Below, piece after piece: positions 4,848 to 64,000 of a stretch of 64,000 nucleotides of DNA (positions are counted from its first letter, which is position 1; every line of letters begins with the position of its first letter). The notes beneath the pieces were generated by a model that did not search any database, had not been told where the DNA came from, and was given only the letters and a program-made list of their open reading frames with translations. The stretch is from positions 240,146,689 through 240,210,688 of the forward strand of contig NC_085841.1 of the NCBI RefSeq assembly GCF_035594765.1. Reading direction: 5' to 3'. Position numbers and translations under genes: made by a program. This stretch comes from Anolis carolinensis (lineage: Eukaryota).

Positions 4848-4867
4848 GAAGTACTCTGAAAGCCATG

Positions 4868-7495: not shown

Positions 7496-7519
7496 TATAA
7501 GTATAGTCAATACTTAAAC

Positions 7520-13512: not shown

Positions 13513-14593
13513 CTGTATAAAAATCTAAATCAGATATGCCTTTTGTTTGATCCGATAGGTTATTTTTATAGGTCCGCCCCCCGCCCCCCCAAAAAAAACA
13601 AGGAGGCAATCCAATGCAAGAGTATATGAGGGTTGGGTTCTACTGGATTCTTTGGGATGGAGTGGGAGTTACTTCTGAGTAGATAGGTCTCTGTAAATGC
13701 AGCCTTACACAGAGGACACATGTACAAATGACACTGAAGTTGTTCACAAGAGGTTGGAAGAACTCTGACATTTGGTCATATTTCTCAGGAATTCTTTTCT
13801 GATCCTAACTTGTGTTCATTGCCTCTTGCCAGGGACTCTTGCTTTCAGAAAGCAACCCCACCCCAACATGTTCTTGCATCTTTTATTTTGTCTTCCACCC
13901 CTGACATGCTAGGGAAGTAAATCTCGGCTTAGAAAGCCAGTCTTCTGGTACAGCCATACATCAGTGTCATAGACCAGGGCAAAGCATAGTTTGTAGCAGC
14001 TAGTTCAGACATGGGCAAATTTAGGCCCTCCGGGTGTTTTGGACTTCAACTCCCACAATTCCTAACAGCCGATAAGATGGCTGGGATTTCTGGGAGTTTT
14101 CCTTATTTTCCTTTTTTCCCCCATTTATTCTTGGAACACTCTTTCTTCTCCAGTGGCCAGTGGGGGAAAAGATAGGGTTTCTCTCGCAAAGGATCCAAAG
14201 TCATTGCCTGCTGAGTTTTGATAGTGGATAAAGTGTTGCAAAATAGATCATCCTGGTAGAGAGATACCCATGAGTTACATTTTGCTATTTTCTAGAAACA
14301 GCTACATGCTGCAACATTCTTTCTCTTATTTTTTTTCCTTGCCATGACACTATACTCTTCCCTATGACAGGTGTAGATAAATAAACCAATAAAAATGGGT
14401 GAAGCTAGAGCCAGACACTGGATTGCTTGTTTTCCTCAAGGTCACAGATACTGTGCTTTGAATAACTGCATGCTATCTCCAGGTTTATTTTGGTTAAATA
14501 TGAAGCTCCCACAGGAACGTTTTGAATGGTGTCAGTCCAGTACATGGTAACACATTGAATATGTGGTATTAAAATAGGGGGCCCTACCACTAA

Positions 14594-15578
14594 GGCCCTT
14601 TCCACACTGCCACATAATCCAGATTAACAAAGCAAATAATCCACATTATCTGTTTTGAACTGGATTTTATTTATTTGTTTGTTTGTTTTCTATCTCACCT
14701 CGCAGGGGACTCAGAGCAGCGTACACCATATATTTAGGCAAACATTCAATGAGTTTTATGGGCTGTATGACAATGTTCCAGAAGCATTCTCTCCTGACGT
14801 TTCACCCACATCTCTGGCAGGCATCCTAAGAGGTTGTGAGGTTTGTTGGAAACTGGGCAAATGGGGTTTATATATCTGTGGAATGTCCAGGGTGGGAGAA
14901 AGAACTTTTGTCTGTTGGAGACAACCTTGAATGTTGCAATTGGCCAGCTTGATTAGCATTGAATAGCCTTGCAGCTTCAAAGCCTGGCTGTTTCCTGCCT
15001 GGGGGAATCCTTCGGAAGTGTTAGCTGGCCCTGATTGTTTCCTGTCTGGAGTTCCTCTGTTTTTTGAGTGTTGATCTTTATTTACTGTCCTGATTTTAAG
15101 CCAGGTGGCCAATTGCAATATTCACACTCTCCACAAACAGACAAAAGTTCTTTCTCCCATTCAGGGGATTCCACAGACATATAAATCTCACTTGCCTAGT
15201 TTCCATCAGACCTCACAACCTTGAAGGATGCCTGCCATAGATGTGGGTGAAACGTCAGGAGAGAATGCTTCTGGAACATGGCGATACAGCCCGGAAAACT
15301 CACAGCAGCCCAGTGATTCCTGCAATGAAAGCCTTCAACAACACATTAAACATTCAATGCCTCAATTATACAACTATTAAAAACATAACATAACATCATT
15401 AAAACAGTAGACATAAACAATTTAAAACCAACAGCATTAAACATAATCTAGTACACAATTACCACGTTACACAAATCCTTAGTTATAATTCAGCTGCTTC
15501 ATTTCCACTGTCTACACTGCCATATAATCCAGTTCAAAGCAGATGATCTGGATTTTATATGGCAGTGTAGAAGGGGCC
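14594..15578. mobile_element. PIF/Harbinger-like MITE hosting nested insertions
   Basis: TIR GGCCCTTTCCACACTGCC / GGCAGTGTAGAAGGGGCC with TAA TSD on both sides. Related copies at about 11457, 17825, 18500 and 19173. Confidence 0.65.
14750..15345. mobile_element. Penelope-like retroelement remnant with inverted arms (duplicate at about 44276-44871; related fragment at 43495-43632)
   Basis: About 14750-14950 is the reverse complement of about 15105-15305 (GTTCCAGAAGCATTCTCTCCTGACGTTTC / GAAACGTCAGGAGAGAATGCTTCTGGAAC). Family assignment is from recall. Confidence 0.65.
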
Positions 15579-16558
15579 TAAATATGCATGCAATCTAACA
15601 CCACTTCAACTGCCATGGCTCAATGCAGTAGATTCATGGAAGCTGTAGTTTTTTGAGGTACCAGCAATCTTTTACAGAGAAGGCTTTGAAGGCCTTGTAA
15701 AACAACAACTCACAGGATCCCCTAGCATTGAGCCATGGTATCAAACTGCATTCATTCTACAATGTAGGTGCACCCTACAAAACCAGGCACAGCATATGTA
15801 GATCATGTACTTTTTAGGGTGGCAAATTAAAGATGAGATGGGATATTGGCACACTTTTCTTACCAAAGATGGACCCTAGCACCAGCCAGGGCCAATGAGA
15901 GAGGACTTCAGCTTATACATCAGTCTGGGACTAGAAGCCAAGGAGGAGCTCCTATGCATTTCTGACATCGGTAGCTGCCTGCTTTGTTTGTATTTTATCA
16001 TAATCATATTTTTCTACAAAACTGAAAACAGAAACTATAATATTTCATGTTATAAGTACTATTATTTTTGTTGAAAATAATTAAGATCCTTAAATTGTTG
16101 AGAGGAGTCCTCAACACCTAGGTCCCAAAACCATTTCTGTGGCTGCATCTATACTGTTGAATTAATGCAGTTTGACACCTCTTTCAGTGCCATGGCTCAA
16201 TGCTATGGAATCCTGGGAATTTGCACACTCTTTTGCTTTCTCACTTCATCACATTTATTAAATTCTACTGGGTCTTATACTTAAAATCTGGTAACCCACT
16301 GTGTTCATCACATTAGGTTGGATTCAAGTGTAGAGCAGAGCATTATTTCCATATTTTAAGCATGAGGCCAGCATTCTTTTCAAATGTTTCAGGAGGTGGT
16401 GGGAAAGTGGATTTTGGGAAAAGATTCGGATGAATGGCCAGTTCAGTAATGTGATGGCATTCATTGCTCTCAGGATTAAAATGAGACATGTCCCCAATTT
16501 GTGGGAGGGGAAATCGTGGGAGGCGCCAAGATAGCCTTGTTAGAGAAAGTGTATTGTG

Positions 16559-16891
16559 CCATGTCTCCATGCTGTGCAGTCCTGGGAGTTATAGTTTCCC
16601 AAGGTCCATACCCTTCTCTGGGTGCATTTACACTATGGAATGAATGCTCTTGGACCCCACTTTGAATACCATAGCTCCATACTATGCATTCCTGGGAGTT
16701 TAGTTTCCCAAGGTCCATACCCTTCTCTGGGTGCATTTACATTATGGAATGAATGCTCTTGGACCCCACTTTGAATACCATAGCTCCATACTATGCATTC
16801 CTGGGAGTTATAGTTTCCCAAAGTGCATACACTTCTCTGGGTCCATCTGCACTGGAGAATAAATGCAGTAGGGACCCATTTTAAATGCAAG

Positions 16892-16939
<48 letters not shown>

Positions 16940-17230
16940 CATGTCTCCATGCTGTGCAGTCTTGGGAGTAAGAGTTTTCCAAGGTCCATACCATTCTTTT
17001 GGTGCATTTACAATACGGGGTGAATGCCCTTGCACCCCACTTTAAATCCCATGACTCCATGCAATGGAGTCCTCCTGGGAGTTATAATTTCCCAAAGTCA
17101 ATGCACTTCTCTGGGTGTATCTACACTGTGCAGCTGGACCTTACTTTAAATGCCATGTCAGCATGAGATGGTCTTGGGAACTGCAGTTTTCCAAGGTCCG
17201 TGAACCTTCTCTGGGTGCATCTACACCATG
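16559..17230 (+). repeat. Tandem array of about six ~110-bp units interrupted by a (TTA)n microsatellite (duplicate at about 46085-46756)
   Basis: Units start at about 16559, 16669, 16778, 16939, 17049 and 17153. The (TTA)n tract is at about 16894-16938. Confidence 0.9.
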
Positions 17231-17469
17231 AACTGACGGCAGCTGGGCCTAAGGCTGTTAGGAATGTTGGGAGTTGAAGTCCAAAACTCCTGGCGGGAAG
17301 GCCCAAGTTTGCCCCAGCCTCTGAGTCTGGGCTCCCAGCACTGCGAAATGCTTGTCTATTTCTGTCTCTCTGGCGTGGAAAGAGCCAGCACGGCGGAGAT
17401 GGGGGATTTACAGGGAGTAAGCTGCCGAGCTAACACGACAAAAGCCTCCCATCAACAAACAACCTTTAA

Positions 17470-17636
17470 GGGCATTAAGGGGCGGGGCATTGCCTGGCCC
17501 CGCCCCCTCCCGAGAGGCCCCGCCCCTCCCTTATAAGACCAATGCGGCAGGGCAGCGGGCACTAGGCGTTGCTGCTTCTCATAGAGATATCGTCGCCCGT
17601 ACTCTGAAGTGAGAGCTTAGCCCCGCCGTTTGCACC
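17470..17636 (+). promoter_or_regulatory. TUBA4A core promoter and 5' UTR, copy 1 (CpG-rich)
   Basis: GC boxes at about 17479, 17498 and 17518; TATAA at 17532-17536; CCAAT at 17539-17543; Kozak-context ATG about 100 bp downstream. Confidence 0.8.
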
Positions 17637-27256
<9,620 letters not shown>

Positions 27257-27289
27257 CTACAGATGGCCTTTGTTTGGACCTTCTTTTCC

Positions 27290-27295
27290 ATTAAA
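27290..27295 (+). terminator. Candidate TUBA4A polyadenylation signal ATTAAA (copy 2 at about 56683)
   Basis: ATTAAA lies 34 nt after the stop codon and is followed by GT/T-rich sequence. Confidence 0.5.
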
Positions 27296-29747
27296 GTATG
27301 CTTGGCTTTAATTGCATTCCTGTCAAAAGTGTCTTTCTTGCCCAAGATTGTGGTTTCTCCATTCTCATAATGTAGGATGTGAAAATGGGAAGTACATTTC
27401 TTAGTAGCGAAAATTGAGCAACATTGTGGAACAGTATTGCTTCTGATTTTCAGGGTTTTTTTTTTTAAACCCTTACTACTGGCACATGATAAAGTGAAAC
27501 ACTGGCTTTTTGCAAAATCCAAGAATGCCCCTAGGCAACATGAAACATTAAGAAATGGAAATGTAGACTTTGTTTAGAAGCTTAGCTAGTCAGCCAAATA
27601 CAATCCTGGGAGATTACTACCACCGGTTTCGTTCTGTGGGATGGGTTTCATTTAATTTTGTGACAGCAAAGTATCCAATTTGGCATTTTGGGGATTAGAC
27701 CACATCTGTGCCATGCTACTTATCTCTGGGTTTCATCAGTTTCCTGGATTTGGTAAGGTGATTTTGTGTTTCATAATGAAGACCTAATGTCTGAATGATT
27801 CTCAAGGTCCTGGGAAAGTATCTTTCTTTTGGTCTGGATGTTTTGTGACAGGCTATACCCACTGTGTGACTGCTATTTTGCAACTTGCCACACTCACTCT
27901 TGCAGCCATTTTGTGACTCTTCATACAGTTCCCTAAAAACTCATAAACTCCTTTAAATAAGATAAGCGGAATAGGATTAGCCAATAAGTTTGTCAGTCAG
28001 TGGGAGCTAAAGAAATCTATGGGTATCTCTATCTACTTCCCTCATTCTGGTAAAGATTTCAGATGCAGATCATCAAAACGCCTGTATTGCACTCTTTCTC
28101 CAAAATGCTGAGCAGCATTTCACTGCACATCAATCTTTTTCTAATGCACTCATGATTTGCCTAGGAGAATTTTGCCAAGGCTTAATTTGAAAAGAAGCAT
28201 TTTGTATGTGTGTCACATCTAGTACTCAGAAGGTTTTGGCTGCCTTACTGAAGTAAATACGGCAGTTTACAGCATTGTGTCCGTAGATATAATTTTGAAT
28301 GAAAACATTCATAAATCAGAACCATTGGATATGCAAAAACAAAAACATAACCCTATATCCACTTCCAGCTGGGCTAATGACAGGTAATGCTTAATGCGAT
28401 GAAAAGACATTATAAAGGTTCATGGATTTGCCCTGCATCAGGGCGATTCCATGGGCTCCTGGGGGAGGGGCATGGAGAAGCTGCCGCTCCACACCCCGCA
28501 TTGCCCAACTTTCCATGTTCCTTATCCCATGGGGGAAAATGTTGCCGCCCAGCTCCCCCACCAGTTGAAAGGAAGGCATCGCAGGAAGGCTCACGTGTTG
28601 TTGCGGCAGTGGCCTGTCTGATGAGGTTGTACAGAGTCTTTGGGAAAACAACAGAGCCAGGCTAGAAAGCGTTAGTTAAGGCTTTCTATTTTCCATTTCT
28701 CAACCTTTCTATCTCTTAAAACACTACATCTGCTTTTCTATCCTGTTTTAGATTAGAAATGTTTTCTTTAACATCATAAAAACCTTTTTGTATTAGATAA
28801 CAATGTAAGAAGATGAAAGTGTAAGGTGTTAAAATGCCCATTCTATATTCACTATTGTACCCTTCCACATTGCTTGTATATTTGCAATATAAATTATATG
28901 GGGAAAAATCTTCAGCTCACAGAACAATTTAAAATCTGGAGAAAAAGCAATAGCTTCCCCTTTTCTACCTGCTGTTTTTTAAAACTGCTTAATCATTCAT
29001 CTATGAATTTCACAATTGCTGGGCTACTTAGAAGAGAGTCCAACTTGAAAAAATCTTCTCGCCCCAAGTTAGTCTCCAGTAGCCTTGCCAACCTATGATC
29101 CACCCTCCTCCATACAAGGCGGAGATCCAATCCTCTTCCACTCCACTTTTTTCTGTATACACAAGTACAGTATCACAAGAATCTAAAAAGAGATGTGCCA
29201 GTCTTCATCCACCCTCATAAACGGAGGTGAGTGATATGTTTATGGTATGAACCTCCTTGGCCTTTCTGTACTTTCATTTACACACTGATGCTCGCCCTGG
29301 CACCATTTTCTTTCAATACAAATGCTTTCTATCTGCTAACCTTGTCAAGAACAGCCACTGCACTTGCTGTATTTGTCTTATGTGTGAATTCTTAAGACAA
29401 AGGTGTTGCAGCTCTACACAAAACTAACCTTTTGGACTGTGTGAAGAATACATACTATAATTGGATATTATACATTTGTCTGGAGTTCGTGTTCATTGGA
29501 AATCACTGGAACCTGAGTCAGTTAAACAAGATCTCCTATTCTATACCACTCAACCTCCCTTCACCTAAACAATTAGATTAGCAAAAATTAGACAAACATG
29601 GCTAATACACAATGATATAGAAGCCACTTGATGTAGAAGAGGAAACTGACCGAAGTGAAATGAATAGGTAAGAAAAAACCAGTATGGTTAGGTCATCCCG
29701 TTCATTCCTCAACTTAAAAACCACTGATGCAGCTGCATTGTAAAGAC

Positions 29748-29753
29748 TTTATT
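29748..29753 (-). terminator. Candidate STK16 polyadenylation signal AATAAA (copy 2 at about 58902)
   Basis: TTTATT on the + strand, about 410 nt past the STK16 stop codon. Confidence 0.55.
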
Positions 29754-30162
29754 GAACACATAGGCACTGAGGGTGTGCCTGCACCAAAATAAATAGGGCG
29801 CCAGTCCCTCAATAATTAGCCGCAAGCAATACTTAAGATTTTTAAAAAGCTGGCCATTTCCCCATCTATTGTTGAGGTCCCTTGTACAACATCCTATGAA
29901 GGGAGCTGGTAAGTTGCCAAACAGACCAGCTGAGACCCAAATATATTCTTGAGGTGCATGCTTGGACACCAGTGAGAATGGCAAGGTAACTGCCAAGAAA
30001 GTCCCAAACTTATCAGCTCCAAAGCAAGAGGTGGCCCCACTCTGGAAAGTGGCAAGCACAGAACAGAACATACCATGTCCTGGCTTTGAACTTAACCTCT
30101 TGAGGTCCCATTTGGGCGGCAACGCCTCTCCTGGCCCCATCTCTACTACACATTCAGTGGGC

Positions 30163-33100
30163 TCAGATGCGTGTGGTGTCCTGTCCAGCAGGTGGTGGCT
30201 GTATCTCTTCAAGCTGGCAGATAATGCCAGCAATGTATGGGCGCTGTTGAGGATTCACTATCATCATCGAGCAGAGGAGACATTCCAAGGCAGGCGAATA
30301 CCTGTAATTTAGAGGCCATTCACATTGGATCTTCCTTGAAATCTGGGCAGCTTTGAACTTCCCTTTCATGCAGCACTTCCTTACCTTGTATTCTGGGGCA
30401 CAGTGAGATCATTCTGTACAGCCAAGGCCACACTGTCCCCCTTTTGGAAGATCATGTCATAAGGCCCCTCACCAAACATCATACAGTACAGAACACAGCC
30501 TAAGGACTAAGGAAAGGCAAGATGAGTATATGTAGCAGAAGGCTGGCCCTAGAATGGAGAGAGGCCACAAGAACATTCCTCCCTTGTATAGGAATAAACC
30601 ACATGACATTATTTAGAGCATTTGCAGATGTGCTTTTCTAAGTGGAAATTAAGGCCCTTACCCAGACATCAGTACGTTCATCAATAACACAGTCACGTTC
30701 AACAGTGAACAGTTCTGGTGCTCGGTAAGAGATGGTACAGCGCTGGGCAGCCCAGTCCTGTGAGATAAAGAGACAAAACTGAACTTCAGCTACAGAACAT
30801 TAGTAGGGTAGGGGCATGATCAGAAGTCTTCAGTTCCACCTTTTCTCCCTGGACTATTCCTGTGATGCCCCTTGGTGGTTATGTGGCAACAGCCACAAGA
30901 AGATGTTTCAGTGCAGTGGTACTAGCATTAAATCAAAAAGGGGAGCAGAAATCCAGCACAGCCACCAGACAGCAAGGCATGCTGCTTATGAGCCTTATAA
31001 TACATTAATAGAAAGTGTTTTCTTTCTTTTAAGCATCTATTTTTGTTTGTTGATTTGCTAATTCTTTGTCTCCTGTTAAGATAATAGCTGCATTAGATAT
31101 GGGGAAATTGAAAAATTGGGGAAATTGGTTTCCTTTTGGATCATAGCTGGAGCTGGTTAGCCTAGGTGACATCCAGTCTGTAAGGATTTTGAGGAATAGG
31201 GAGAGGTAGCTTGTGGGAACACAAAATAGCTTTTAAACTGAATGACATCCTTGACCTGAGCAGAAGCAGCTGAGGTCTTGAGAAAGAGCTGTAGCTCAGT
31301 GGGAATGTGCACATGCTTTGCATGAAGAAGGTTCAAGACAGTTTGAAATGTCAGGGACATGCTGCGAATAGGATCAGACAATACTGGCATGGATTGATCA
31401 GCATTATAGCCTTGTACAGGGTATCATCTTATGTCTTCCTCTCTGCTTCATGAACTCTTCATGTAAAACACATTGTCTTTCACTGATTCCTCTTTTAACG
31501 TGCTCCTCTGTATAATGAAACACATGTTAGGATCACACCTCTCTTTTTGCATGTGCTAACATCTTGTTAACATTCTCCTTCCCTAAGTCATTAATCAGCC
31601 TTGTTTGGGGAGAATTAATCTAAATCTTCTATTTTCTATGTCCAAGAAACTAACATGTAACTCATAATAACATCCAGTAGCAATGACTACTAAGCACTGT
31701 TCGAGCCTCATTAATGTAACAAACCTGTTGCCCATTCTATTCACACTGCAATGAGAGCAAACTCCTCAATATTACCAAATATGGTTCCCACTACCAGCTG
31801 CCACCTTAGCTGATTTCTGTTTGTTTTTAATTCTAAAACTCAACCTAGGTAGAAAATATTCATGTTCACAGAAAAAATAATGTGAGATACTTCTATAATG
31901 TGTTAATATCAATTTTTCTCTGGTAATGCCACATCAGGACTCCATAGAGCAATATCTCTAAGGTTCCCTAGAGTTGTAGGTTGTTTTCTAAAAGTAGAAC
32001 AATGCTTTTTTTTAATATAGCAATGTTAGTGCTAGCATTTTAACACATAATGCATACAGTTATTTTTTTGAATTCAGATGCAATATCCTCCCTCCAAAGC
32101 CCTGAATAATGTGATAATGTAATAATGTGAATAGTCACAAGTGGAGTGCCGCAGGGTTCCGTCCTGGGCCCGGTTCTGTTCAACATCTTTTTAACGACTT
32201 AGACGAAGGGTTAGAAGGCACGATCATCAAGTTTGCAAATAACACCAAACTGGGAGGGATAGCTAACACTCCAGAAGACAGGAGCAGAATTCAAAACGAT
32301 CTTAACAAATTAGAGAGATGGGCCGAAACTACAAAATGAAGTTCAACAGAGACAAATGCAAGATACTTCACTTCAGCAGAAAAAAATGGAATGCAAAGAT
32401 ACAGAATGGGGGACGCCTGGCTCGACAGCAGTACGTGTGAAAAAGATCTTGGAGTCCTCGTGGACAACAAGTTAAACATGAGCCAACAATGTGATGGGGC
32501 AGCGAAAAAAGCCAACGGGATTCTGGCCTGCATAAATCTGGGTATAGCATCTAGATCCAGGGAAGTCATGCTACCCCTCTATTCTGACTTGGTCAGGCCA
32601 CACCTGGAATACTGTGTCCAATTCTGGGCACCGCAATTGAAGGGAGATGTTGACAAGCTGGAAAGCGTCCAGAGGAGGGCAACTAAAATGATCAAGGGTC
32701 TGGAGAACAAACTCTATGAGGAGTGGCTTAAAGAGCTGGGTATGTTTAGCCTGCAGAAGAGAAGGCTGAGAGGAGACATGATAGCCATATACAAATATGT
32801 GAGGGGAAGTCATAGGGAGGAGGGAGCAAGCTTGTTTTCTGCTGCCCTGGAGACTAGGACGCGGAACAAACTACAGGAAAGGAGATTCCACCTGAACATC
32901 AGGAAGAACTTTCTCACTGTGAGAGCTGTTCGGCAGTGGAACTCTCTGCCCTGGACTGTGGTGGAGGCTCCCTCTTTGGAGGCTTTTAAGCAGAGGCTGG
33001 ATGGCCATCTGTCGGGGTGCTTTGAATGAGATTTTCCTGTTTCTTGCAGGACGGCCCATGAGGTCTCTTCCAACTCTACAATTCTATGAGTTTTAAATTT

Positions 33101-36100
33101 GCACCCCAGGTTATGGGAGTGGGAAGGTATGCATCTAGCTTTCATAGTTAATCTAATTTAGATTCTTCCCTCTTATCTTTGTTGGAAATTCCCACATCCT
33201 TTTCACTGGGCGACTCTTGTACCTGCAATGTCATGGCTTCCCGGGAGCTCCGTACTTCAATGCGTGCTTGATTCATAGAGCCTAGGTCCATCAACAATGG
33301 TTGGTCATCGTCATCCAGAAGCACATTTGTTGGTTTCAGGTCTCTGAAAGAAGCAGAATGGAATCTCCAGAATTGTCCAGTCACGGCCCTCTGTTTCTTA
33401 CTTGAAGTTATCTTTTAATCTCCTGATTTCTCAACCTCAGATTTCTTCCTATTGACAATACTGCCAGGGATGCTTCACACCAGCATGCAGTTTCTTACTT
33501 CTATTCACTCCTTCACTGTGCACTTAATGGCACTTGTGTATCTTCACTCTATGGCTCCCCCACCCCAGCCTACACATGGCTTGTCCCACAACATCATTGC
33601 TAACAATCTCTGCTTTAGAACCAGTTTCTCACCTGTGTGCATAACCCTTATTATGAATGGCCTGCAGCCCTCGGCAAAGACCATGAAGAATGGCAAGGAT
33701 CCGCTCCTCAGGCATGAAGGCACCTTTGTCTTTCAGAGCTTCAACTTCCTGCCAAAGAGTTCCTCTCTACAAAGAAAAGGACAGCAACTCTGGTGATTTG
33801 AATCAGGTATATTTTTTTCAAATTTACTACGTGAGGTTGAGATTATTTATCCTTGAGTACCCTCATTGCTTCTGTCCGAATACACTCCAGAATGGGATGA
33901 GGTCTTTTAAATATTGCAAAACAACAACTTCCATCAGCACAAATCAGCATATACAGGGGAGATTAATGGAGTTAGTCTACCACTTGGAGAGTCACATGCT
34001 CCATATCCCCAAACAAGAAGAAGCAACCAAAGCAAGCCTGAGAGATGTTTTGTCCATCCCAGAACCCTAGCTGCCATCAGTCCTAGACAGTCTGACTAAG
34101 AATGAGGCATGATAAGTAGTATTTATTTAGCATCTGAAGGGCTTACGGTCCCCTACTCCTGCACCAGTTTACTCAGGGAAGAGCTTGGCAACAGATTTGC
34201 AGCAGTGCTATTCCAACACACTTATATGCAGTTATTCTTGTTTTACCAGGGATCATTATGCATGTATCTCTGAAGTTATTGTATCACCCTGCTACAGTCT
34301 GCAGTTTTTAGATGACTGCTGCTGTGAAAGACTCTAAAATGCAAACACATCAGAAATATGGGAGAGGCAGAATAATTTGATACTAATATAGTAATGGCAT
34401 GGAGCCCCCAGTGGTGCAATGAGTTAAACCCTTGTGCCAGCAGGACTGCTGACCGAAAGGTCGGCGGTTCGAATCCAGGGAGCAAGGTGAGCTCCCGTCT
34501 GTCAGCCCTGGCTCCCCATGCGGGGACATGAGGGAAACCTCCCATAGGATGGTAAAACATCCGGGTGTCCCATAGGAGCAACATCTTTGCAGACGGCCAA
34601 TTCTCTAACACCAGAAGCAACTTGCAGTTTCTCAAGTCGCTCCTGACATGGAAAAAAGTAATGGCATCTGTTGTTCTCAGTTTGCTACTATAGATTTGAA
34701 CATGGTAAAATGACTGAATACCAGAAGCTCTGAGATACGTTGGTACAGTTTTGTCTTGAATACCTTATCTTCAATGTTTACGTGGCAATAATAGCTGTGA
34801 GTACTTTTGGCTGGTACCCTATCAACACTGTTCCTTGGAAAAAGCAGGTATCTCTAATATAACAAACACATAGGTTACACCTAGAGTATTATCATGCATG
34901 GTATGATAATGCATGGTATGAAAAGCATTTTTGAATACTTCTGCTATTAATAACTAAAGCCATCAGGCTTTTGTTTGGACTTCTTTTTCACAGCATATAA
35001 ATTCTTATTTTGTTCATCATGTCAATTTATTTCCAAGCACAATTTTTTTCAAATTGTGCTGCTTATTGCCTGTAAATCCCCAAATAGCTTGGAACCAGAA
35101 CAATGAATAGCCATCTTTTCCCACACTAGTTGACATCTTCACCAGAGTCTTTATTTGCAAAAGAAACTATTAGAATTTCTCAATTGTAGCAGGATGATGG
35201 AAAGCAAAACAGCATATCCTAGGAATTTTGTTTCTTCCATCGCATTTATATTTCAGTAATCTAGTTAAAGCTTTTAGACTGACTTATTTTGTCAGGAATT
35301 TTGTTTCAGTTGGTTCTTGTTTTGATTCTGTTTTGATATTAGAAAACTGTTTTCTGTATTCATCTTAGTCTCAAGCCCAAGCAAGACAAAAAAACAAACA
35401 AACACAGAACCCAGGAGGCTGAGCCACTGTCAGAAGGTATTAGCCTCTATTATTGGCATCTCAGTATACTGTGCACATCTCAGTCATGCTTGTGTGAATC
35501 CACAAATACACATTCCTCTGCATGCTAAGCAGAACCCATATGTATCTCAAACAGAAACACTAGGTATGAAGCCACTTATCTCTCACCTTGAGGAAAGGTA
35601 GTAGCAGCCAGGCCTCGTGTTTGGATCCTTTCTCCACAACAGCATGTGCACATAGGGGCAAGATATTTGGGTGATCAAAGAGCTGATGCATCTCAATCTC
35701 ATGCATGGCTTCCTGGCGATCATCCTTGTCATGGCATACGATGCGTTTCAGTGCATAGAAGCGTCCATCATGCAGCCCCTCTACAAGATCTACATAGCTG
35801 AAGCCACTGGGTCAGAGAGGAATTGGGTCAAGAACAGAGTGGGTTGGTAATGGAAAGAAGCTCATACTACGCTGAGATTATTTTCTCCTTCTCCTGCTGT
35901 CTGCATACTAAGGACTTTATCACACTAGCCTGTTGTCTTATCACAATGACATTATGTAAACATATGGAAACATTGTTATTGGAACAATATATATTACACC
36001 TCAACACAATTGTGCAAATGCTGGTACTTAGTTGTGAATATCCTACTTTGAGTTTTCTGCACAGCCTCACTTCCGATCCATGTCTGCCCTACCTAGTGCA

Positions 36101-41039: not shown

Positions 41040-41459
41040 CCGTGTTTCCCCGAAAATAAGACAGTGTCTTATATTAATTTTTGTTCCCAAAGATGTGCTA
41101 GGTCTTATTTTCAGGGGATGTCTTATTTTTCCATGAAGAAAAATTCACTTTTATTGTTGAACAAAAAAAAAGAACATTTATTATATACTGTACAGTAGAT
41201 ATCATCACAAACCAGCATAACGAGACAAACTGTGAATCATATCAAGAATTTCTTGTTACTACCATTATTTTCATGTACAGCAATCTATGGTACGTATATT
41301 TACCAATCCTGCATGCTCTGGTGTTCTGTTTGGCAGGCATGCTTCCAAACAAAAACTTTGCTAGGTCTTACTTTCAGGGGAGGCCTTATATTTAGCAATT
41401 CAGCAAAATTTCTACTAGGTCTTATTTTCTGGGGATGTCTTATTTTCGGGGAAACAGGG
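41040..41459. mobile_element. Tigger-like MITE
   Basis: TIR CCGTGTTTCCCCGAAAATAAGAC / GTCTTATTTTCGGGGAAACAGG with TA TSD. Confidence 0.8.
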
Positions 41460-43290: not shown

Positions 43291-43633
43291 TAAAGGGTGC
43301 ACCTACACTGTTTGGTACCACTTGGACTGTTGTGGTTCAATGCTATGAAATCCTAGTAGCTGCAGTTTTACAAAGCCTTTATCATCCCTCTCTTCCCAAG
43401 TGAGCTGGTGCTCACCAAACTACAACTCCTATGATTCCACAGCACCGAGCCATGGCAGTTAAAGAAATGCCAAACAGAGTTAATTCTGTTTTCAAAAGCT
43501 TTCATGGCTGGAATTGCTGGGTTGCTGTGAGTTTTCCGGGCTGTGTGGCCATGCTCCAGAAGCTTTTTCTCCTGATGTTACACCCACATCTGTGGCAGGC
43601 ATCCTCAGAGGTTGTGAGGTCTGTTGGAAACTA

Positions 43634-44099
43634 GTCCTGTTTAAGGAGCTCCACTGGCTGCCGTTTATTTTCCAGACCCAATTCAAGGTGCAGGTGTTGA
43701 CCTACAAAGCCCTGAATGGTTTGGGACCCACTTACCTTTCTGACCACATCTCCCCTTATGAACCTGCACGATCCCTTCATTCGTCGGGGGAGGCCCTCCT
43801 CTCGCTTCCGCCTCCGTCACAAGTGCGGTTGGTGGGGATGAGGGAGAGGGCCTTCTTCGTGGCAGCCCCCCGGCTCTGGAACACGCTCCCGGGGGAAATT
43901 AGGCAAGCTGTCACCTTGGAAGTGTTCAGGAAGAGCCTGAAAACCTGGCTCTTCACACAGGCTTTTGAATAAGTACCACCCACTGTACGCTAAACCCTTA
44001 TACTAGCGGTTACTTCTGACCAGTTGTACCTGTTGGTTAACTCCTTGACATAGGCACAGAGTTCACCCCAGTTTAAGGTTCTCCCCATGATCTTATAGC
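43634..44099 (+). mobile_element. L2-type LINE 3' fragment, truncated at the duplication junction
   Basis: Encodes ELHWLP..FKVQVLTYKALNGLGPTYL..RAFFVAAPRLWNTLP..FRKSLKTWLF, a typical L2 ORF2 C-terminus. No (TAAA)n tail precedes 44100. Confidence 0.8.
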
Positions 44100-46417
44100 A
44101 TAGGGGGCCCTACCACTAAGGCCCTTTCCACACTGCCACATAATCCAGATCAACAAAGCAAATAATCCACATTATCTGTTTTGAACTGGATTTTATTTAT
44201 TTGTTTGTTTGTTTTCTATCTCACCTCGCAGGGGACTCAGAGCGGCGTACACCATATATTTAGGCAAACATTCAATGAGTTTTATGGGCTGTATGACAAT
44301 GTTCCAGAAGCATTCCCTCCTGACGTTTCACCCACATCTCTGGCAGGCATCCTAAGAGGTTGTGAGGTTTGTTGGAAACTGGGCAAATGGGGTTTATATA
44401 TCTGTGGAATGTCCAGGGTGGGAGAAAGAACTTTTGTCTGTTGGAGACAACCTTGAATGTTGCAATTGGCCAGCTTGATTAGCATTGAATAGCCTTGCAG
44501 CTTCAAAGCCTGGCTGTTTCCTGCCTGGGGGAATCCTTCGGAAGTGTTAGCTGGCCCTGATTGTTTCCTGTCTGGAGTTCCTCTGTTTTTTGAGTGTTGA
44601 TCTTTATTTACTGTCCTGATTTTAAGCCAGGTGGCCAATTGCAATATTCACACTCTCCACAAACAGACAAAAGTTCTTTCTCCCATTCAGGGGATTCCAC
44701 AGACATATAAATCTCACTTGCCTAGTTTCCATCAGACCTCACAACCTTGAAGGATGCCTGCCATAGATGTGGGTGAAACGTCAGGAGAGAATGCTTCTGG
44801 AACATGGCGATACAGCCCGGAAAACTCACAGCAGCCCAGTGATTCCTGCAATGAAAGCCTTCAACAACACATTAAACATTCAATGCCTCAATTATACAAC
44901 TATTAAAAACATAACATAACATCATTAAAACAGTAGACATAAACAATTTAAAACCAACAGCATTAAACATAATCTAGTACACAATTACCACGTTACACAA
45001 ATCCTTAGTTATAATTCAGCTGCTTCATTTCCACTGTCTACACTGCCATATAATCCAGTTCAAAGCAGATGATCTGGATTTTATATGGCAGTGTAGAAGG
45101 GGCCTAAATATGCATGCAATCTAACACCACTTCAACTGCCATGGCTCAATGCAGTAGATTCATGGAAGCTGTAGTTTTTTGAGGTACCAGCAATCTTTTA
45201 CAGAGAAGGCTTTGAAGGCCTTGTAAAACAACAACTCACAGGATCCCCTAGCATTGAGCCATGGTATCAAACTGCATTCATTCTACAATGTAGGTGCACC
45301 CTACAAAACCAGGCACAGAATATGTAGATCATGTACTTTTTAGGGTGGCAAATTAAAGATGAGATGGGATATTGGCACACTTTTCTTACCAAAGATGGAC
45401 CCTAGCACCAGCCAGGGCCAATGAGAGAGGACTTCAGCTTATACATCAGTCTGGGACTAGAAGCCAAGGAGGAGCTCCTATGCATTTCTGACATCGGTAG
45501 CTGCCTGCTTTGTTTGTATTTTATCATAATCATATTTTTCTACAAAACTGAAAACAGAAACTATAATATTTCATGTTATAAGTACTATTATTTTTGTTGA
45601 AAATAATTAAGATCCTTAAATTGTTGAGAGGAGTCCTCAACACCTAGGTCCCAAAACCATTTCTGTGGCTGCATCTATACTGTTGAATTAATGCAGTTTG
45701 ACACCTCTTTCAGTGCCATGGCTCAATGCTATGGAATCCTGGGAATTTGCACACTCTTTTGCTTTCTCACTTCATCACATTTATTAAATTCTACTGGGTC
45801 TTATACTTAAAATCTGGTAACCCACTGTGTTCATCACATTAGGTTGGATTCAAGTGTAGAGCAGAGCATTATTTCCATATTTTAAGCATGAGGCCAGCAT
45901 TCTTTTCAAATGTTTCAGGAGGTGGTGGGAAAGTGGATTTTGGGAAAAGATTCGGATGAATGGCCAGTTCAGTAATGTGATGGCATTCATTGCTCTCAGG
46001 ATTAAAATGAGACATGTCCCCAATTTGTGGGAGGGGAAATCGTGGGAGGTGCCAAGATAGCCTTGTTAGAGAAAGTGTATTGTGCCATGTCTCCATGCTG
46101 TGCAGTCCTGGGAGTTATAGTTTCCCAAGGTCCATACCCTTCTCTGGGTGCATTTACACTATGGAATGAATGCTCTTGGACCCCACTTTGAATACCATAG
46201 CTCCATACTATGCATTCCTGGGAGTTTAGTTTCCCAAGGTCCATACCCTTCTCTGGGTGCATTTACATTATGGAATGAATGCTCTTGGACCCCACTTTGA
46301 ATACCATAGCTCCATACTATGCATTCCTGGGAGTTATAGTTTCCCAAAGTGCATACACTTCTCTGGGTCCATCTGCACTGGAGAATAAATGCAGTAGGGA
46401 CCCATTTTAAATGCAAG

Positions 46418-46465
<48 letters not shown>

Positions 46466-46995
46466 CATGTCTCCATGCTGTGCAGTCTTGGGAGTAAGAG
46501 TTTTCCAAGGTCCATACCATTCTTTTGGTGCATTTACAATACGGGGTGAATGCCCTTGCACCCCACTTTAAATCCCATGACTCCATGCAATGGAGTCCTC
46601 CTGGGAGTTATAATTTCCCAAAGTCAATGCACTTCTCTGGGTGTATCTACACTGTGCAGCTGGACCTTACTTTAAATGCCATGTCAGCATGAGATGGTCT
46701 TGGGAACTGCAGTTTTCCAAGGTCCGTGAACCTTCTCTGGGTGCATCTACACCATGAACTGACGGCAGCTGGGCCTAAGGCTGTTAGGAATGGTGGGAGT
46801 TGAAGTCCAAAACTCCTGGCGGGAAGGCCCAAGTTTGCCCCAGCCTCTGAGTCTGGGCTCCCAGCACTGCGAAATGCTTGTCTATTTCTGTCTCTCTGGC
46901 GTGGAAAGAGCCAGCACGGCGGAGATGGGGGATTTACAGGGAGTAAGCTGCCGAGCTAACACGACAAAAGCCTCCCATCAACAAACAACCTTTAA

Positions 46996-47162
46996 GGGCA
47001 TTGAGGGGCGGGGCATTGCCTGGCCCCGCCCCCTCCCGAGAGGCCCCGCCCCTCCCTTATAAGACCAATGCGGCAGGGCAGCGGGCACTAGGCGTTGCTG
47101 CTTCTCATAGAGATATCGTCGCCCGTACTCTGAAGTGAGAGCTTAGCCCCGCCGTTTGCACC
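46996..47162 (+). promoter_or_regulatory. TUBA4A core promoter and 5' UTR, copy 2
   Basis: Duplicate of 17470-17636 with GC boxes, TATAA and CCAAT retained. Confidence 0.8.
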
Positions 47163-56649
<9,487 letters not shown>

Positions 56650-59316
56650 CTACAGATGGCCTTTGTTTGGACCTTCTTTTCCATTAAAGTATGCTTGGCT
56701 TTAATTGCATTCCTGTCAAAAGTGTCTTTCTTGCCCAAGATTGTGGTTTCTCCATTCTCATAATGTAGCTCCACTGAATACAGTTCTTTTTCAGTGTCAC
56801 CAAGTAGTAATAGCTGTTTCCTTGCTCTGTGGCAGGATGTGAAAATGGGAAGTACATTTCTTAGCAGCGAAAATTGAGCAACATTGTGGAACAGTATTGC
56901 TTCTGATTTTTTTTTTTAAACCCTTACTACTGGAACATGATAAAGTGAAACACTGATTCTCAAGGTCCTGGGAAAGTATCTTTCTTTTGGTCTGGATGTT
57001 TTGTGACAGGCTATACCCACTGTGTGACTGCTATTTTGCAACTTGCCACACTCACTCTTGCAGCCATTTTGTGACTCTTCATACAGTTCCCTGAAAACTC
57101 ATAAACTCCTTTAAATAAGATAAGCAGAATAGGATTAGCCAATAAGTTTGTCAGTCAGTGGGAGCTAAAGAAATCTATGGGTATCTCTATCTACTTCCCT
57201 CATTCTGGTAAAGATTTCAGATGCAGATCATCAAAACGCCTGTATTGCACTCTTTCTCCAAAATGCTGAGCAGCATTTCACTGCACATCAATCTTTTTCT
57301 AATGCACTCATGATTTGCCTAGGAGAATTTTGCCAAGGCTTAATTTGAAAAGAAGCATTTTGTATGTGTGTCACATCTAGTACTCAGAAGGTTTTGGCTG
57401 CCTTACTGAAGTAAATATGGCAGTTTACAGCATTGTGTCCGTAGATATAATTTTGAATGAAAACATTCATAAATCAGAACCATTGGATATGCAAAAACAA
57501 AAACATAACCCTATATCCACTTCCAGCTGGGCTAATGACAGGTAATGCTTAATGCGATGAAAAGACATTATAAAGGTTCATGGATTTGCCCTGCATCAGG
57601 GCGATTCCATGGGCTCCTGGGGGAGGGGCATGGAGAAGCTGCCGCTTCACACCCCGCATTGCCCAACTTTCCATGTTCCTTATCCCATGGGGGAAAATGT
57701 TGCTGCCCAGCTCCCCCACCAGTTGAAAGGAAGGCATCGCAGGAAGGCTCACGTGTTGTTGCGGCAGTGGCCTGTGATGAGGTTGTACAGAGTCTTTGGG
57801 AAAACAACAGAGCCAGGCTAGAAAGCGTTAGTTAAGGCTTTCTATTTTCCATTTCTCAACCTTTCTATCTCTTAAAACACTACATCTGCTTTTCTATCCT
57901 GTTTTAGATTAGAAATGTTTTCTTTAACATCATAAAAACCTTTTTGTATTAGATAACAATGTAAGAAGATGAAAGTGTAAGGTGTTAAAATGCCCATTCT
58001 ATATTCACTATTGTACCCTTCCACATTGCTTGTATATTTGCAATATAAATTATATGGGGAAAAATCTTCAGCTCACAGAACAATTTAAAATCTGGAGAAA
58101 AAGCAATAGCTTCCCCTTTTCTACCTGCTGTTTTTTAAAACTGCTTAATCATTCATCTATGAATTTCACAATTGCTGGGCTACTTAGAAGAGAGTCCAAC
58201 TTGAAAAAATCTTCTGGCCCCAAGTTAGTCTCCAGTAGCCTTGCCAACCTATGATCCACCCTCCTCCATACAAGGCGGAGATCCAATCCTCTTCCACTCC
58301 ACTTTTTTCTGTATACACAAGTACAGTATCACAAGAATAAAAAGAGATGTGCCAGTCTTCATCCACCCTCATAAACGGAGGTGAGTGATATGTTTATGGT
58401 ATGAACCTCCTTGGCCTTTCTATACTTTCATTTACACACTGATGCTCGCCCTGGCACCATTTTCTTTCAATACAAATGCTTTCTATCTGCTAACCTTGTC
58501 AAGAACAGCCACTGCACTTGCTGAATTTGTCTTATGAGTGAATTCTTAAGACAAAGGTGTGGCAGCTCTACACAAAACTAACCTTTTGGACTGTGTGAAG
58601 AATACATACTATAATTGGATATTATACATTTGTCTGGAGTTCGTGTTCATTGGAAATCACTGGAACCTGAGTCAGTTAAACAAGATTTCCTATTCTATAC
58701 CACTCAACCTCCCTTCACCTAAACAATTAGATTAGCAAAAATTAGACAAACATGGCTAATACACAATGATATAGAAGCCACTTGATGTAGAAGAGGAAAC
58801 TGACCGAAGTGAAATGAATAGGTAAGAAAAAAACAGTATGGTTAGGTCATCCCGTTCATTCCTCAACTTAAAAACCACTGATGCAGCTGCATTGTAAAGA
58901 CTTTATTGAACACATAGGCACTGAGGGTGTGCCTGCACCAAAATAAATAGGGCGCCAGTCCCTCAATAATTAGCCGCAAGCAATACTTAAGATTTTTAAA
59001 AAGCTGGCCATTTCCCCATCTATTGTTGAGGTCCCTTGTACAACATCCTATGAAGGGAGCTGGTAAGTTGCCAAACAGACCAGCTGAGACCCAAATATAT
59101 TCTTGAGGTGCATGCTTGGACACCAGTGAGAATGGCAAGGTAACTGCCAAGAAAGTCCCAAACTTATCAGCTCCAAAGCAAGAGGTGGCCCCACTCTGGA
59201 AAGTGGCAAGCACAGAACAGAACATACCATGTCCTGGCTTTGAACTTAACCTCTTGAGGTCCCATTTGGGCGGCAACGCCTCTCCTGGCCCCATCTCTAC
59301 TACACATTCAGTGGGC

Positions 59317-62300
59317 TCAGATGCGTGTGGTGTCCTGTCCAGCAGGTGGTGGCTGTATCTCTTCAAGCTGGCAGATAATGCCAGCAATGTATGGGCGCTG
59401 TTGAGGATTCACTATCATCATCGAGCAGAGGAGACATTCCAAGGCAGGCGAATACCTGTAATTTAGAGGCCATTCACATTGGATCTTCCTTGAAATCTGG
59501 GCAGCTTTGAACTTCCCTTTCATGCAGCACTTCCTTACCTTGTATTCTGGGGCACAGTGAGATCATTCTGTACAGCCAAGGCCACACTGTCCCCCTTTTG
59601 GAAGATCATGTCATAAGGCCCCTCACCAAACATCATACAGTACAGAACACAGCCTAAGGACTAAGGAAAGGCAAGATGAGTATATGTAGCAGAAGGCTGG
59701 CCCTAGAATGGAGAGAGGCCACAAGAACATTCCTCCCTTGTATAGGAATAAACCACATGACATTATTTAGAGCATTTGCAGATGTGCTTTTCTAAGTGGA
59801 AATTAAGGCCCTTACCCAGACATCAGTACGTTCATCAATAACACAGTCACGTTCAACAGTGAACAGTTCTGGTGCTCGGTAAGAGATGGTACAGCGCTGG
59901 GCAGCCCAGTCCTGTGAGATAAAGAGACAAAACTGAACTTCAGCTACAGAACATTAGTAGGGTAGGGGCATGATCAGAAGTCTTCAGTTCCACCTTTTCT
60001 CCCTGGACTATTCCTGTGATGCCCCTTGGTGGTTATGTGGCAACAGCCACAAGAAGATGTTTCAGTGCAGTGGTACTAGCATTAAATCAAAAAGGGGAGC
60101 AGAAATCCAGCACAGCCACCAGACAGCAAGGCATGCTGCTTATGAGCCTTATAATACATTAATAGAAAGTGTTTTCTTTCTTTTAAGCATCTATTTTTGT
60201 TTGTTGATTTGCTAATTCTTTGTCTCTGTTAAGATAATAGCTGCATTAGATATGAGGAAATTGAAAAATTGGTGAAATTGGTTTCCTTTTGGATCATAGC
60301 TGGAGCTGGTTAGCCTATGTGACATCCAGTCTGTAAGGATTTTGAGGAATAGGGAGAGGTAGCTTGTGGGAACACAAAATAGCTTTTAAACTGAATGACA
60401 TCCTTGACCTGAGCAGAAGCAGCTGAGGTCTTGAGAAAGAGCTGTAGCTCAGTGGGAATGTGCACATGCTTTGCACGAAGAAGGTTCAAGACAGTTTGAA
60501 ATGTCAGGGACATGCTGCGAATAGGATCAGACAATACTGGCATGGATTGATCAGCATTATAGCCTTGTACAGGGTATCATCTTATGTCTTCCTCTCTGCT
60601 TCATGAACTCTTCATGTAAAACACATTGTCTTTCACTGATTCCTCTTTTAACGTGCTCCTCTGTATAATGAAACACATGTTAGGATCACACCTCTCTTTT
60701 TGCATGTGCTAACATCTTGTTAACATTCTCCTTCCCTAAGTCATTAATCAGCCTTGTTTGGGGAGAATTAATCTAAATCTTCTATTTTCTATGTCCAAGA
60801 AACTAACATGTAACTCATAATAACATCCAGTAGCAATGACTACTAAGCACTGTTCGAGCCTCATTAATGTAACAAACCTGTTGCCCATTCTATTCACACT
60901 GCAATGAGAGCAAACTCCTCAATATTACCAAATATGGTTCCCACTACCAGCTGCCACCTTAGCTGATTTCTGTTTGTTTTTAATTCTAAAACTCAACCTA
61001 GGTAGAAAATATTCATGTTCACAGAAAAAATAATGTGAGATACTTCTATGATGTGTTAATATCAATTTTTCTCTGGTAATGCCACATCAGGGCTCCATAG
61101 AGCAATATCTCTAAGGTTCCCTAGAGTTGTAGGTTGTTTTCTAAAAGTAGAACAATGTTTTTTTTTAATATAGCAATGTTAGTGCTAGCATTTTAACACA
61201 TAATGCATACAGTTATTTTTTTGAATTCAGATGCAATATCCTCCCTCCAAAGCCCTGAATAATGTGATAATGTAATAATGTGAATAGTCACAAGTGGAGT
61301 GCCGCAGGGTTCCGTCCTGGGCCCGGTTCTGTTCAACATCTTTATTAACGACTTAGACGAAGGGTTAGAAGGCACGATCATCAAGTTTGCAAATAACACC
61401 AAACTGGGAGGGATAGCTAACACTCCAGAAGACAGGAGCAGAATTCAGAACGATCTTAACAAATTAGAGAGATGGGCCGAAACTACAAAATGAAGTTCAA
61501 CAGAGACAAATGCAAGATACTTCACTTCGGCAGAAAAAAATGGAATGCAAAGATACAGAATGGGGGACGCCTGGCTCGACAGCAGTACGTGTGAAAAAGA
61601 TCTTGGAGTCCTCGTGGACAAGAAGTTAAACATGAGCCAACAATGTGATGGGGCAGCGAAAAAAGCCAACGGGATTCTGGCCTGCATAAATCGGGGTATA
61701 GCATTTAGATCCAGGGAAGTCATGCTACCCCTCTATTCTGACTTGGTCAGGCCACACCTGGAATACTGTGTCCAATTCTGGGCACCGCAATTGAAGGGAG
61801 ATGTTGACAAGCTGGAAAGCGTCCAGAGGAGGGCAACTAAAATGATCAAGGGTCTGGAGAACAAACTCTATGAGGAGTGGCTTAAAGAGCTGGGTATGTT
61901 TAGCCTGCAGAAGAGAAGGCTGAGAGGAGACATGATAGCCACATACAAATATGTGAGGGGAAGTCATAGGGAGGAGGGAGCAAGCTTGTTTTCTGCTGCC
62001 CTGGAGACTAGGACGCGGAACAAACTACAGGAAAGGAGATTCCACCTGAACATCAGGAAGAACTTTCTCACTGTGAGAGCTGTTCGGCAGTGGAACTCTC
62101 TGCCCTGGACTGTGGTGGAGGCTCCCTCTTTGGAGGCTTTTAAGCAGAGGCTGGATGGCCATCTGTCGGGGTGCTTTGAATGAGATTTTCCTGTTTCTTG
62201 CAGGACGGCCCATGAGGTCTCTTCCAACTCTACAATTCTATGAGTTTTAAATTTGCACTCCGGGTTATGGGAGTGGGAAGGTATGCATCTAGCTTTCATA

Positions 62301-62920
62301 GTTAATCTAATTTAGATTCTTCCCTCTTATCTTTGTTGGAAATTCCCACATCCTTTTCACTGGGCGACTCTTGTACCTGCAATGTCATGGCTTCCCGGGA
62401 GCTCCGTACTTCAATGCGTGCTTGATTCATAGAGCCTAGGTCCATCAACAATGGTTGGTCATCGTCATCCAGAAGCACATTTGTTGGTTTCAGGTCTCTG
62501 AAAGAAGCAGAATGGAATCTCCAGAATTGTCCAGTCACGGCCCTCTGTTTCTTACTTGAAGTTATCTTTTAATCTCCTGATTTCTCAACCTCAGATTTCT
62601 TCCTATTGACAATACTGCCAGGGATGCTTCACACCAGCATGCAGTTTCTTACTTCTATTCACTCCTTCACTGTGCTCTTAATGGCACTTGTGTATCTTCA
62701 CTCTATGGCTCCCCCACCCCAGCCTACACATGGCTTGTCCCACAATATCATTGCTAACAATCTCTGCTTTAGAACCAGTTTCTCACCTGTGTGCATAACC
62801 CTTATTATGAATGGCCTGCAGCCCTCGGCAAAGACCATGAAGAATGGCAAGGATCCGCTCCTCAGGCATGAAGGCACCTTTGTCTTTCAGAGCTTCAACT
62901 TCCTGCCAAAGAGTTCCTCT
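59317..62920 (-). CDS. STK16: Serine/threonine kinase 16, copy 2, partial (last five coding exons 62920-62787, 62497-62377, 59911-59816, 59660-59539, 59455-59317; 5' exons lie beyond the window)
   Basis: Exons match copy 1 at an offset of 29154, with intact splice sites and the same motifs (HRDLKPTN, DLG, APE). Confidence 0.93.
61285..62244 (+). mobile_element. 5'-truncated CR1 LINE, duplicate copy
   Basis: Matches 32131-33090; ORFs 61299..61493 and 61545..62183. Confidence 0.93.
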
Positions 62921-64000
62921 CTACAAAGAAAAGGACAGCAACTCTGGTGATTTGAATCAGGTATATTTTTTTCAAATTTACTACGTGAGGTTTAGATTAT
63001 TTATCCTTGAGTACCCTCATTGCTTCTGTCCGAATACACTCCAGAATGGGATGAGGTCTTTTAAATATTGCAAAACAACAACTTCCATCAGCACAAATCA
63101 GCATATACAGGGGAGATTAATGGAGTTAGTCTACCACTTGGAGAGTCACATGCTCCATATCCCCAAACAAGAAGAAGCAACCAAAGCAAGCCTGAGAGAT
63201 GTTTTGTCCATCCCAGAACCCTAGCTGCCATCAGTCCTAGACAGTCTGACCAAGAATGAGGCATGATAAGTAGTAATGTTTACGTGGCAATAATAGCTGT
63301 GAGTACTTTTGGCTGGTACCCCATCAACACTGTTCCTTGGAAAAAGCAGGTATCTCTAATATAACAAACACATAGGTTACACCTAGAGTATTATCATGCA
63401 TGGTATGATAATGCATGGTATGAAAAGCATTTTTGAATACTTCTGCTATTAATAACTAAAGCCATCAGGCTTTTGTTTGGACTTCTTTTTCACAGCATAT
63501 AAATTCTTATTTTGTTCATCATGTCAATTTATTTCCAAGCACAGTTTTTTTCAAATTGTGCTGCTTATTGCCTGTAAATCCCCAAATAGCTTGGAACCAG
63601 AACAATGAATAGCCATCTTTTCCCACACTAGTTGACATCTTCACCAGAGTCTTTATTTGCAAAAGAAACTATTAGAATTTCTCAATTGTAGCAGGATGAT
63701 GGAAAGCAAAACAGCATATCCTAGGAATTTTGTTTCTTCCATCGCGTTTATATTTCAGTAATCTAGTTAAAGCTTTTAGACTGACTTATTTTGTCAGGAA
63801 TTTTGTTTCAGTTGGTTCTTGTTTTGATTCTGTTTTGATATTAGAAAACTGTTTTCTGTATTCATCTTAGTCACAAGCCCATGCAAGACAAAAAAAAAAA
63901 CACAGAACCCAGGAGGCTGAGCCACTGTCAGAAGGTATTAGCCTCTATTATTGGCATCTCAGTATACTGTGCACATCTCAGTCATGCTTGTGTGAATCCA

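Follow-up and report, generated by a model that had tools for sequence, protein, structure and literature searches.

A 64,000-nt stretch of the Anolis carolinensis genome assembly, hereafter the window, carries two near-identical copies of a segment that contains TUBA4A and STK16, which raises the question of whether the anole genome holds a recent duplication or whether two haplotypes of one locus were assembled in tandem. A first-pass annotation had set out these alternatives, and they proved to be the right pair of readings to weigh. Judged from the assembled sequence, the repeat is probably real, a young tandem segmental duplication with a 29.5-kb unit.

Self-BLAST and a MAFFT alignment confirmed the earlier claim that the sequence from 44100 to the window end repeats 14574–35502 in the same orientation, with a period of 29,526 bp (Table 1). 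The units are arranged head-to-tail with around 99.6% identity, and across about 19.85 kb of aligned sequence they differ by 78 evenly spread substitutions (0.39%; 54 transitions and 24 transversions) and 20 indels. Two adjacent direct copies that retain high identity over a long stretch are what a real tandem duplication presents. The figure of 29.5 kb refers to the repeat period; the visible part of unit 2 is 19.9 kb and runs off the window end, and the partner of 35503–44099 in unit 1 would fall beyond it. Self-BLAST shows no resemblance of 1–14573 to 35503–44099, so the array starts with unit 1. The indels are found at microsatellites and homopolymers, with a few larger ones (Table 1). One of these, the 652-bp segment present in unit 1 only, has repeat-like sequence inside it and is not flanked by a clear target-site duplication.

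Table 1 Features of the repeated TUBA4A–STK16 region (positions in the window)
Feature	Position	Strand	Details	Method
Unit 1 of direct tandem repeat	14574–44099			Self-BLAST and MAFFT
Unit 2, visible part	44100–64000		19.9 kb, collinear with 14574–35502	Self-BLAST and MAFFT
Junction, end of unit 1 to start of unit 2	44099/44100		Sharp, without N	
Collinear direct block 1	14574–19404 = 44100–48937			Self-BLAST and MAFFT
Collinear direct block 2	19540–27375 = 48939–56768			Self-BLAST and MAFFT
Collinear direct block 3	27796–34121 = 56954–63275			Self-BLAST and MAFFT
Collinear direct block 4	34773–35502 = 63275–64000			Self-BLAST and MAFFT
134-bp segment	19406–19539		Unit 1 only	
293-bp segment	27503–27795		Unit 1 only	
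652-bp segment	34121–34772		Unit 1 only; empty site 63274/63275 in unit 2	
67-bp segment	56767–56833		Unit 2 only	
TUBA4A copy 1	17637–27256	+	Exons 17637–17639 (ATG), 24053–24275, 24777–24925, 26285–27256	
TUBA4A copy 2	47163–56649	+	Exons 47163–47165, 53447–53669, 54170–54318, 55678–56649	
STK16 copy 1	30166–38963	-	All seven coding exons found (approximate): 38963–38878 (ATG), 35805–35569, 33763–33647, 33345–33220, 30760–30656, 30506–30375, 30312–30166 (stop)	
STK16 copy 2	59320–62917	-	Five 3' coding exons visible; coding sequence identical to copy 1	

The transition between the units is abrupt. In the MAFFT alignment, homology sets in at 14574/44100 without a gradient, and the 300-base flanks that precede 14574 and 44100 do not align with each other. 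Open reading frames that span the junction reach 39 codons at most. The annotation had reported no run of N at this point, and we found the entire window to be free of N bases. Given that the left flanks are unrelated, we infer that a contig path across the junction needs reads that truly contain it. Unequal crossing-over would fit the missing flanking homology less well than an origin by non-homologous or replication-based processes, on the evidence of the left side, with the right-hand breakpoint falling outside the window.

TUBA4A is complete in both units, with four exons, canonical AG/GT splice sites and a coding sequence of 1347 nt each time. The product of copy 1 has 448 codons, carries Val7 and Lys60, and ends in Glu, bearing out the description of this tubulin as Tyr-less. 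The copies contain Pfam Tubulin and Tubulin_C domains and have 96–98% identity to bird TBA4A (P0020) by tblastn; these domains, the Tyr-less C terminus, the convergent orientation relative to STK16 and the bird-like gene order identify them as TUBA4A orthologues. In copy 1, the ATG exon sits in a CpG island at 17.1–18.6 kb, and each unit has kept this promoter exon, the CpG island and all splice sites of its TUBA4A gene, as expected of a clean genomic duplication.

STK16 exons were traced from stop-free segments and by tblastx against the bird STK16 locus, whose seven exons all map collinearly. Their best match among solved structures is STK16 (2BUJ; E 1.9e-33 and 2.7e-9 for two exons), with the next-best kinase in the PDB at 3e-5 compared with 1.9e-33, and Pfam Pkinase matches to these exons were weak; best kinase match and synteny agree on an STK16 orthologue. 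For copy 2, the two coding exons at the 5' end would lie beyond 64000. Thus the annotation of two STK16 copies, and of intact frames in both units, stands for the two TUBA4A genes and for the seven-exon STK16 copy 1, but extends to five exons of STK16 copy 2, which the window end cuts. In the 5.1 kb from STK16 copy 1 up to the junction there is no CpG island, and tblastx with the bird locus detected no GLB1L exon there or elsewhere in the window; no motif match to GLB1L or DNAJB2 exons was found within the window either. In birds the native promoter of STK16 also serves GLB1L, and STK16 copy 1 has probably lost its link to this promoter; in that case the intact STK16 would be copy 2, past the window end. 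Rfam and tRNA scans of the window for RNA genes were empty; LINE-like open reading frame fragments at 42.5–43.3 kb had no Pfam support, and four translations from 42.6–43.3 kb returned no matches.

TUBA4A copy 2 differs from copy 1 by V7I (53462), K60N (53623) and two silent substitutions (54291 and 55743), and comparison with bird TUBA4A places both amino-acid changes in copy 2. K60 is invariant in 232 of the 232 matched homologues fetched, and the contact between alpha-K60 and alpha-H283 has been described as a vital lateral microtubule interaction (bioRxiv 10.1101/516591). By a rough estimate based on these four substitutions in all, the probability that at least two of the four would be non-synonymous is about 0.02 if tubulin constraint has acted over the long term, about 0.26 if the differences are polymorphisms that segregate and about 0.84 when one of the copies is free of constraint. 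The changes in copy 2 suggest relaxed constraint on a redundant copy, and with K60N this paralogue is likely to be weakened or in decay and not just an added dose. In its duplication reading, the annotation had the dose of a Tyr-less tubulin doubled; given that the invariant lateral-contact lysine is replaced in copy 2 (K60N), a clean doubling is doubtful. Our search with the last exon of TUBA4A returned no anole protein, only 90%-cluster representatives of other animals. The copy-2 exon-2 segment with its intron-encoded flanks matched no anole genomic open reading frame, no anole was among the members of four TUBA4A-like clusters, and a literature search on Anolis and TUBA4A found nothing relevant.

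False gene gains are known to arise commonly from false 'heterotype' duplications, in which two haplotypes of one single-copy locus are assembled in tandem (Ko et al. 2022, PMC9516828). If that had happened here, the sequenced animal would have one TUBA4A and one STK16 and would be heterozygous for a V7I/K60N TUBA4A allele, and the genes apparently gained would be false ones, misleading counts of the tubulin and kinase families in anoles and warranting an assembly flag. We regard this as a serious but rather unlikely explanation. The repeat resembles the published cases in being adjacent, in the same orientation and near-identical, at a divergence compatible with heterozygosity. Its differences are allelic in type, and two alleles would also show this pattern of evenly spread substitutions, microsatellite and homopolymer indels and a few larger indels. 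Nucleotide diversity in green anoles is 0.00155–0.00341, with a standard deviation of about 0.002 per 5-kb window (PMC6681179); the 0.39% observed is near this range of 0.16–0.34%, slightly above it but within about one standard deviation, and is compatible with both explanations, as the annotation had argued for the low divergence. By contrast, in published false duplications a gap in the assembly or in read depth mostly separates the copies, and depth is at the haploid level, properties that Ko et al. did not find in true duplications (PMC9516828), whereas no assembly gap lies at or near the junction described here. The left side of the junction also offers no common sequence to mislead an overlap assembler. 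Moreover, under an assembly artefact a tubulin allele with both amino-acid changes, including the one at the invariant lateral-contact lysine, would have to be segregating.

A third reading takes the two tubulin genes for an old amniote tandem pair. In birds, two tandem alpha-tubulin genes lie upstream of STK16 (loci L001–L004), so alpha-tubulin at this locus is not strictly single-copy across amniotes; human TUBA4A with its neighbour TUBA4B is of the same amniote type, an alpha-tubulin pair next to STK16 and GLB1L. The anole and bird loci are alike in having TUBA4A convergent with STK16 and a history of tandem alpha-tubulin duplication, and from the bird arrangement one could argue that an old pair has been homogenised by gene conversion in the anole. 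However, the identity between the anole units spans around 20 kb and takes in introns, intergenic DNA, repeats and STK16 itself. In birds STK16 lies downstream of both tubulin genes, in the anole between them, and over exon 4 both anole TUBA4A copies are nearer to the STK16-adjacent bird gene (97.8% versus 96.2%). Birds have old paralogues and a single STK16, whereas the anole repeat is recent and includes STK16. The extent and content of the repeat effectively refute gene conversion of a bird-type pair, and we give it next to no credence.

We favour a real duplication because the junction is gapless and the coding changes in TUBA4A copy 2 are of the kind that relaxed constraint would permit. 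The duplicated unit would take in TUBA4A and STK16, which are transcribed convergently, together with about 3 kb upstream of the CpG-island promoter of TUBA4A at one end and about 5 kb upstream of the start-codon exon of STK16 at the other. A divergence of 0.39% would place the event around 2 to 9 million years ago, depending on the substitution rate that is assumed; the duplication could also be polymorphic, or present in heterozygous form in the animal that was sequenced. The resulting arrangement has two complete TUBA4A genes with their own promoter regions and STK16 copy 1 between them, facing the CpG island of TUBA4A copy 2 head-to-head at a distance of 8 kb. A more elaborate version of this history, in which the duplication is fixed and both new arrangements are used, would have the Asn60 TUBA4A expressed as a lineage-specific isotype with altered protofilament contacts and the promoter-less STK16 copy 1 driven by the CpG island of TUBA4A copy 2; we consider this combination improbable.

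A real duplication here would be a young segmental one of the ordinary sort, with nothing unusual in kind. Like other young tandem segmental duplications of vertebrates, it is head-to-tail, tens of kilobases long and more than 99% identical, copies a whole gene with its promoter while cutting a neighbouring gene at one breakpoint, and has one copy that starts to gain amino-acid changes. It differs from them in that the gene is a very strongly conserved alpha-tubulin. A real event would be a very young duplication that can be dated and that affects a gene among the most conserved in vertebrates, and would capture the first steps after duplication, namely a change at an invariant tubulin contact residue and the splitting of a kinase gene from its promoter, as a useful, if unsurprising, example.

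Self-BLAST of the window, which contains no N, revealed four direct collinear blocks with a period of 29,526 bp, confirming that 14574-35502 recurs in the same orientation from 44100 with no N at the junction. The 29.5 kb given by the first-pass annotation holds as the period but not as the extent seen, because unit 2 is visible over 19.9 kb; it runs past the window end, so the window does not define its right limit. Unit homology begins abruptly at 14574 and 44100; the 300-base stretches that precede these two positions cannot be aligned with each other. Because self-BLAST detected no similarity of 1-14573 to 35503-44099, the array begins with unit 1 (14574-44099). Near its beginning, each unit carries a pair of inverted arms of ~206 bp (84% identity). 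A third relative (85-88%) sits in the last part of unit 1, ~0.5 kb short of the junction; the family is too diverged for an obvious role in mediating the rearrangement. The single-copy flank carries four copies of an interspersed repeat (84-91% identity) that is SINE-like in size.

Global alignment of the units over ~19.85 kb gave 78 substitutions (54 transitions and 24 transversions) and 20 indels, a substitution divergence of 0.39% that is evenly spread (3-13 per 2 kb). None of the four large indels has a clear target-site duplication, and the others are homopolymer, microsatellite or short changes. A complex difference ~120 bp past the TUBA4A stop, at which unit 2 has 67 additional bp and lacks 293 bp of unit 1, means that the 3' untranslated regions would differ between copies.

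Coordinates of repeat blocks, genes and sequence differences in the window
Feature	Unit 1 or copy 1	Unit 2 or copy 2	Strand or orientation	Remark
Block 1	14574-19404	44100-48937	direct	
Block 2	19540-27375	48939-56768	direct	
Block 3	27796-34121	56954-63275	direct	
Block 4	34773-35502	63275-64000	direct	
~206-bp arms	14750-14955, 15097-15302		inverted	third relative at 43479-43634
109-bp unit and (TTA)15	~16565-16853	46091-46379		
Interspersed repeat, 230-330 bp				flank: 2435-2765, 7167-7494, 10201-10528 (-), 13283-13510
Indel, 134 bp	19406			unit 1 only
Indel, 293 bp	27503			unit 1 only
Indel, 652 bp	34121			unit 1 only
Indel, 67 bp		56767		unit 2 only
Complex difference	27373-27796	56768-56954		
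CpG island	17.1-18.6 kb	46.6-48.1 kb		holds TUBA4A exon 1
TUBA4A exon 1	17637-17639	47163-47165	+	ATG only
TUBA4A exon 2	24053-24275	53447-53669	+	
TUBA4A exon 3	24777-24925	54170-54318	+	
TUBA4A exon 4	26285-27256	55678-56649	+	
TUBA4A G>A	24068			V7I
TUBA4A G>C	24229			K60N
TUBA4A C>T	24898			silent
TUBA4A T>G	26350			silent
STK16 coding exons (approximate)	38963-38878 (start codon), 35805-35569, 33763-33647, 33345-33220, 30760-30656, 30506-30375, 30312-30166		-	
Antisense ORF, 212 codons	32391-33029	61545-62183	+	ATG-started

Each unit carries an alpha-tubulin gene (Pfam Tubulin and Tubulin_C), whose exons we placed using a bird TBA4A protein (P0020) as a guide. Both copies have AG/GT splice sites throughout and 1347 nt (448 codons plus stop), with frame continuity judged from exon lengths and phases; two intact TUBA4A frames had been proposed, and both are present. 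The gene is assigned as the TUBA4A orthologue because the protein ends in Glu (the Tyr-less terminus noted earlier), is 96-98% identical to bird TUBA4A and is encoded convergently with STK16, the layout also seen in birds. Just upstream of its CpG island lies a 109-bp unit repeated 2.6 times (92% identity), followed by (TTA)15.

In four suboscine bird genomes (L001:4037-23493 and L002-L004), two tandem alpha-tubulin genes are followed by opposite-strand STK16 and then GLB1L, which starts head-to-head ~0.8 kb upstream of STK16. Both anole copies are closer to the STK16-adjacent bird tubulin (97.8% versus 96.2% over exon 4), and no counterpart of the upstream one is present in window positions 1-23,900. 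Whereas the bird pair is an old tandem, we read the anole repeat as a separate and recent event, because its identity spans introns, intergenic DNA, repeats and STK16.

Coding divergence between the TUBA4A copies amounts to four positions (4/1344, 0.30%), scarcely below the non-coding 0.39%. Because bird TUBA4A has V7 and K60, both replacements are assigned to copy 2. Residue 7 varies among fetched homologues (V in 100, I in 100 and M in 18); K60 is present in 232 of 232, and cryo-EM work describes the lateral contact that it makes with alpha-H283, between protofilaments, as vital (bioRxiv 10.1101/516591; see also PMC11006419). With approximate counts of ~1030 non-synonymous and ~314 synonymous sites, the probability of at least two replacements out of four is ~0.02 under long-term tubulin constraint (omega ~0.02), ~0.26 for segregating polymorphism (ratio ~0.1) and ~0.84 if one copy is unconstrained. 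These four substitutions give a modest signal that copy 2 lies outside normal tubulin constraint.

STK16, on the minus strand, best matches human STK16 among solved structures (2BUJ, E 1.9e-33; next kinase, 3e-5). Of the two copies originally annotated, copy 1 is complete in its coding exons, and copy 2 is visible only as five 3' exons, identical in coding sequence. An antisense ORF in an STK16 intron, present in both units, matches nothing in Pfam and probably derives from a repeat or is a chance frame.

Could the repeat be two haplotypes of one locus laid in tandem? Published green-anole nucleotide diversity (0.00155-0.00341, SD ~0.002 per 5-kb window; PMC6681179) makes 0.39% compatible with alleles. 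It also fits a duplication dating back a few million years (~9 Myr with the rate of 2.1e-10 per year used in PMC6681179; ~2 Myr with one near 1e-9), bearing out the earlier remark that low divergence suits both readings. The window holds no N, unlike published false duplications, which are mostly gap-separated (Ko et al. 2022, PMC9516828), and a contig crossing the junction should rest on reads containing it, because the left-side sequences are unrelated. Tandem haplotypes would also require that a tubulin allele carrying two replacements, one of them at an invariant contact residue, segregates; this is possible, but a decaying redundant copy is the likelier explanation. We therefore consider an assembly artefact rather unlikely and a real duplication, fixed or polymorphic, probable; the interpretation leans, on indirect evidence, towards a real, young, ordinary segmental duplication.

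The left limit of the unit lies 3.06 kb upstream of the TUBA4A ATG exon, and its right limit is 5.1 kb upstream of the STK16 start-codon exon, which is apparently preceded by a splice acceptor. Across 38964-44099, the 5.1 kb upstream of that exon in copy 1, we found no GLB1L exon or CpG island. The native STK16 promoter would thus lie beyond the right breakpoint, present only after unit 2, so copy 1 may have been severed from it and would sit head-to-head with the second TUBA4A CpG island, ~8 kb apart. A real duplication would therefore not cleanly double either gene: in place of the doubled tubulin dose first suggested, the anole would carry one normal and one K60N TUBA4A, together with an STK16 that probably lacks its promoter and, outside the window, a second STK16 that is presumably intact.
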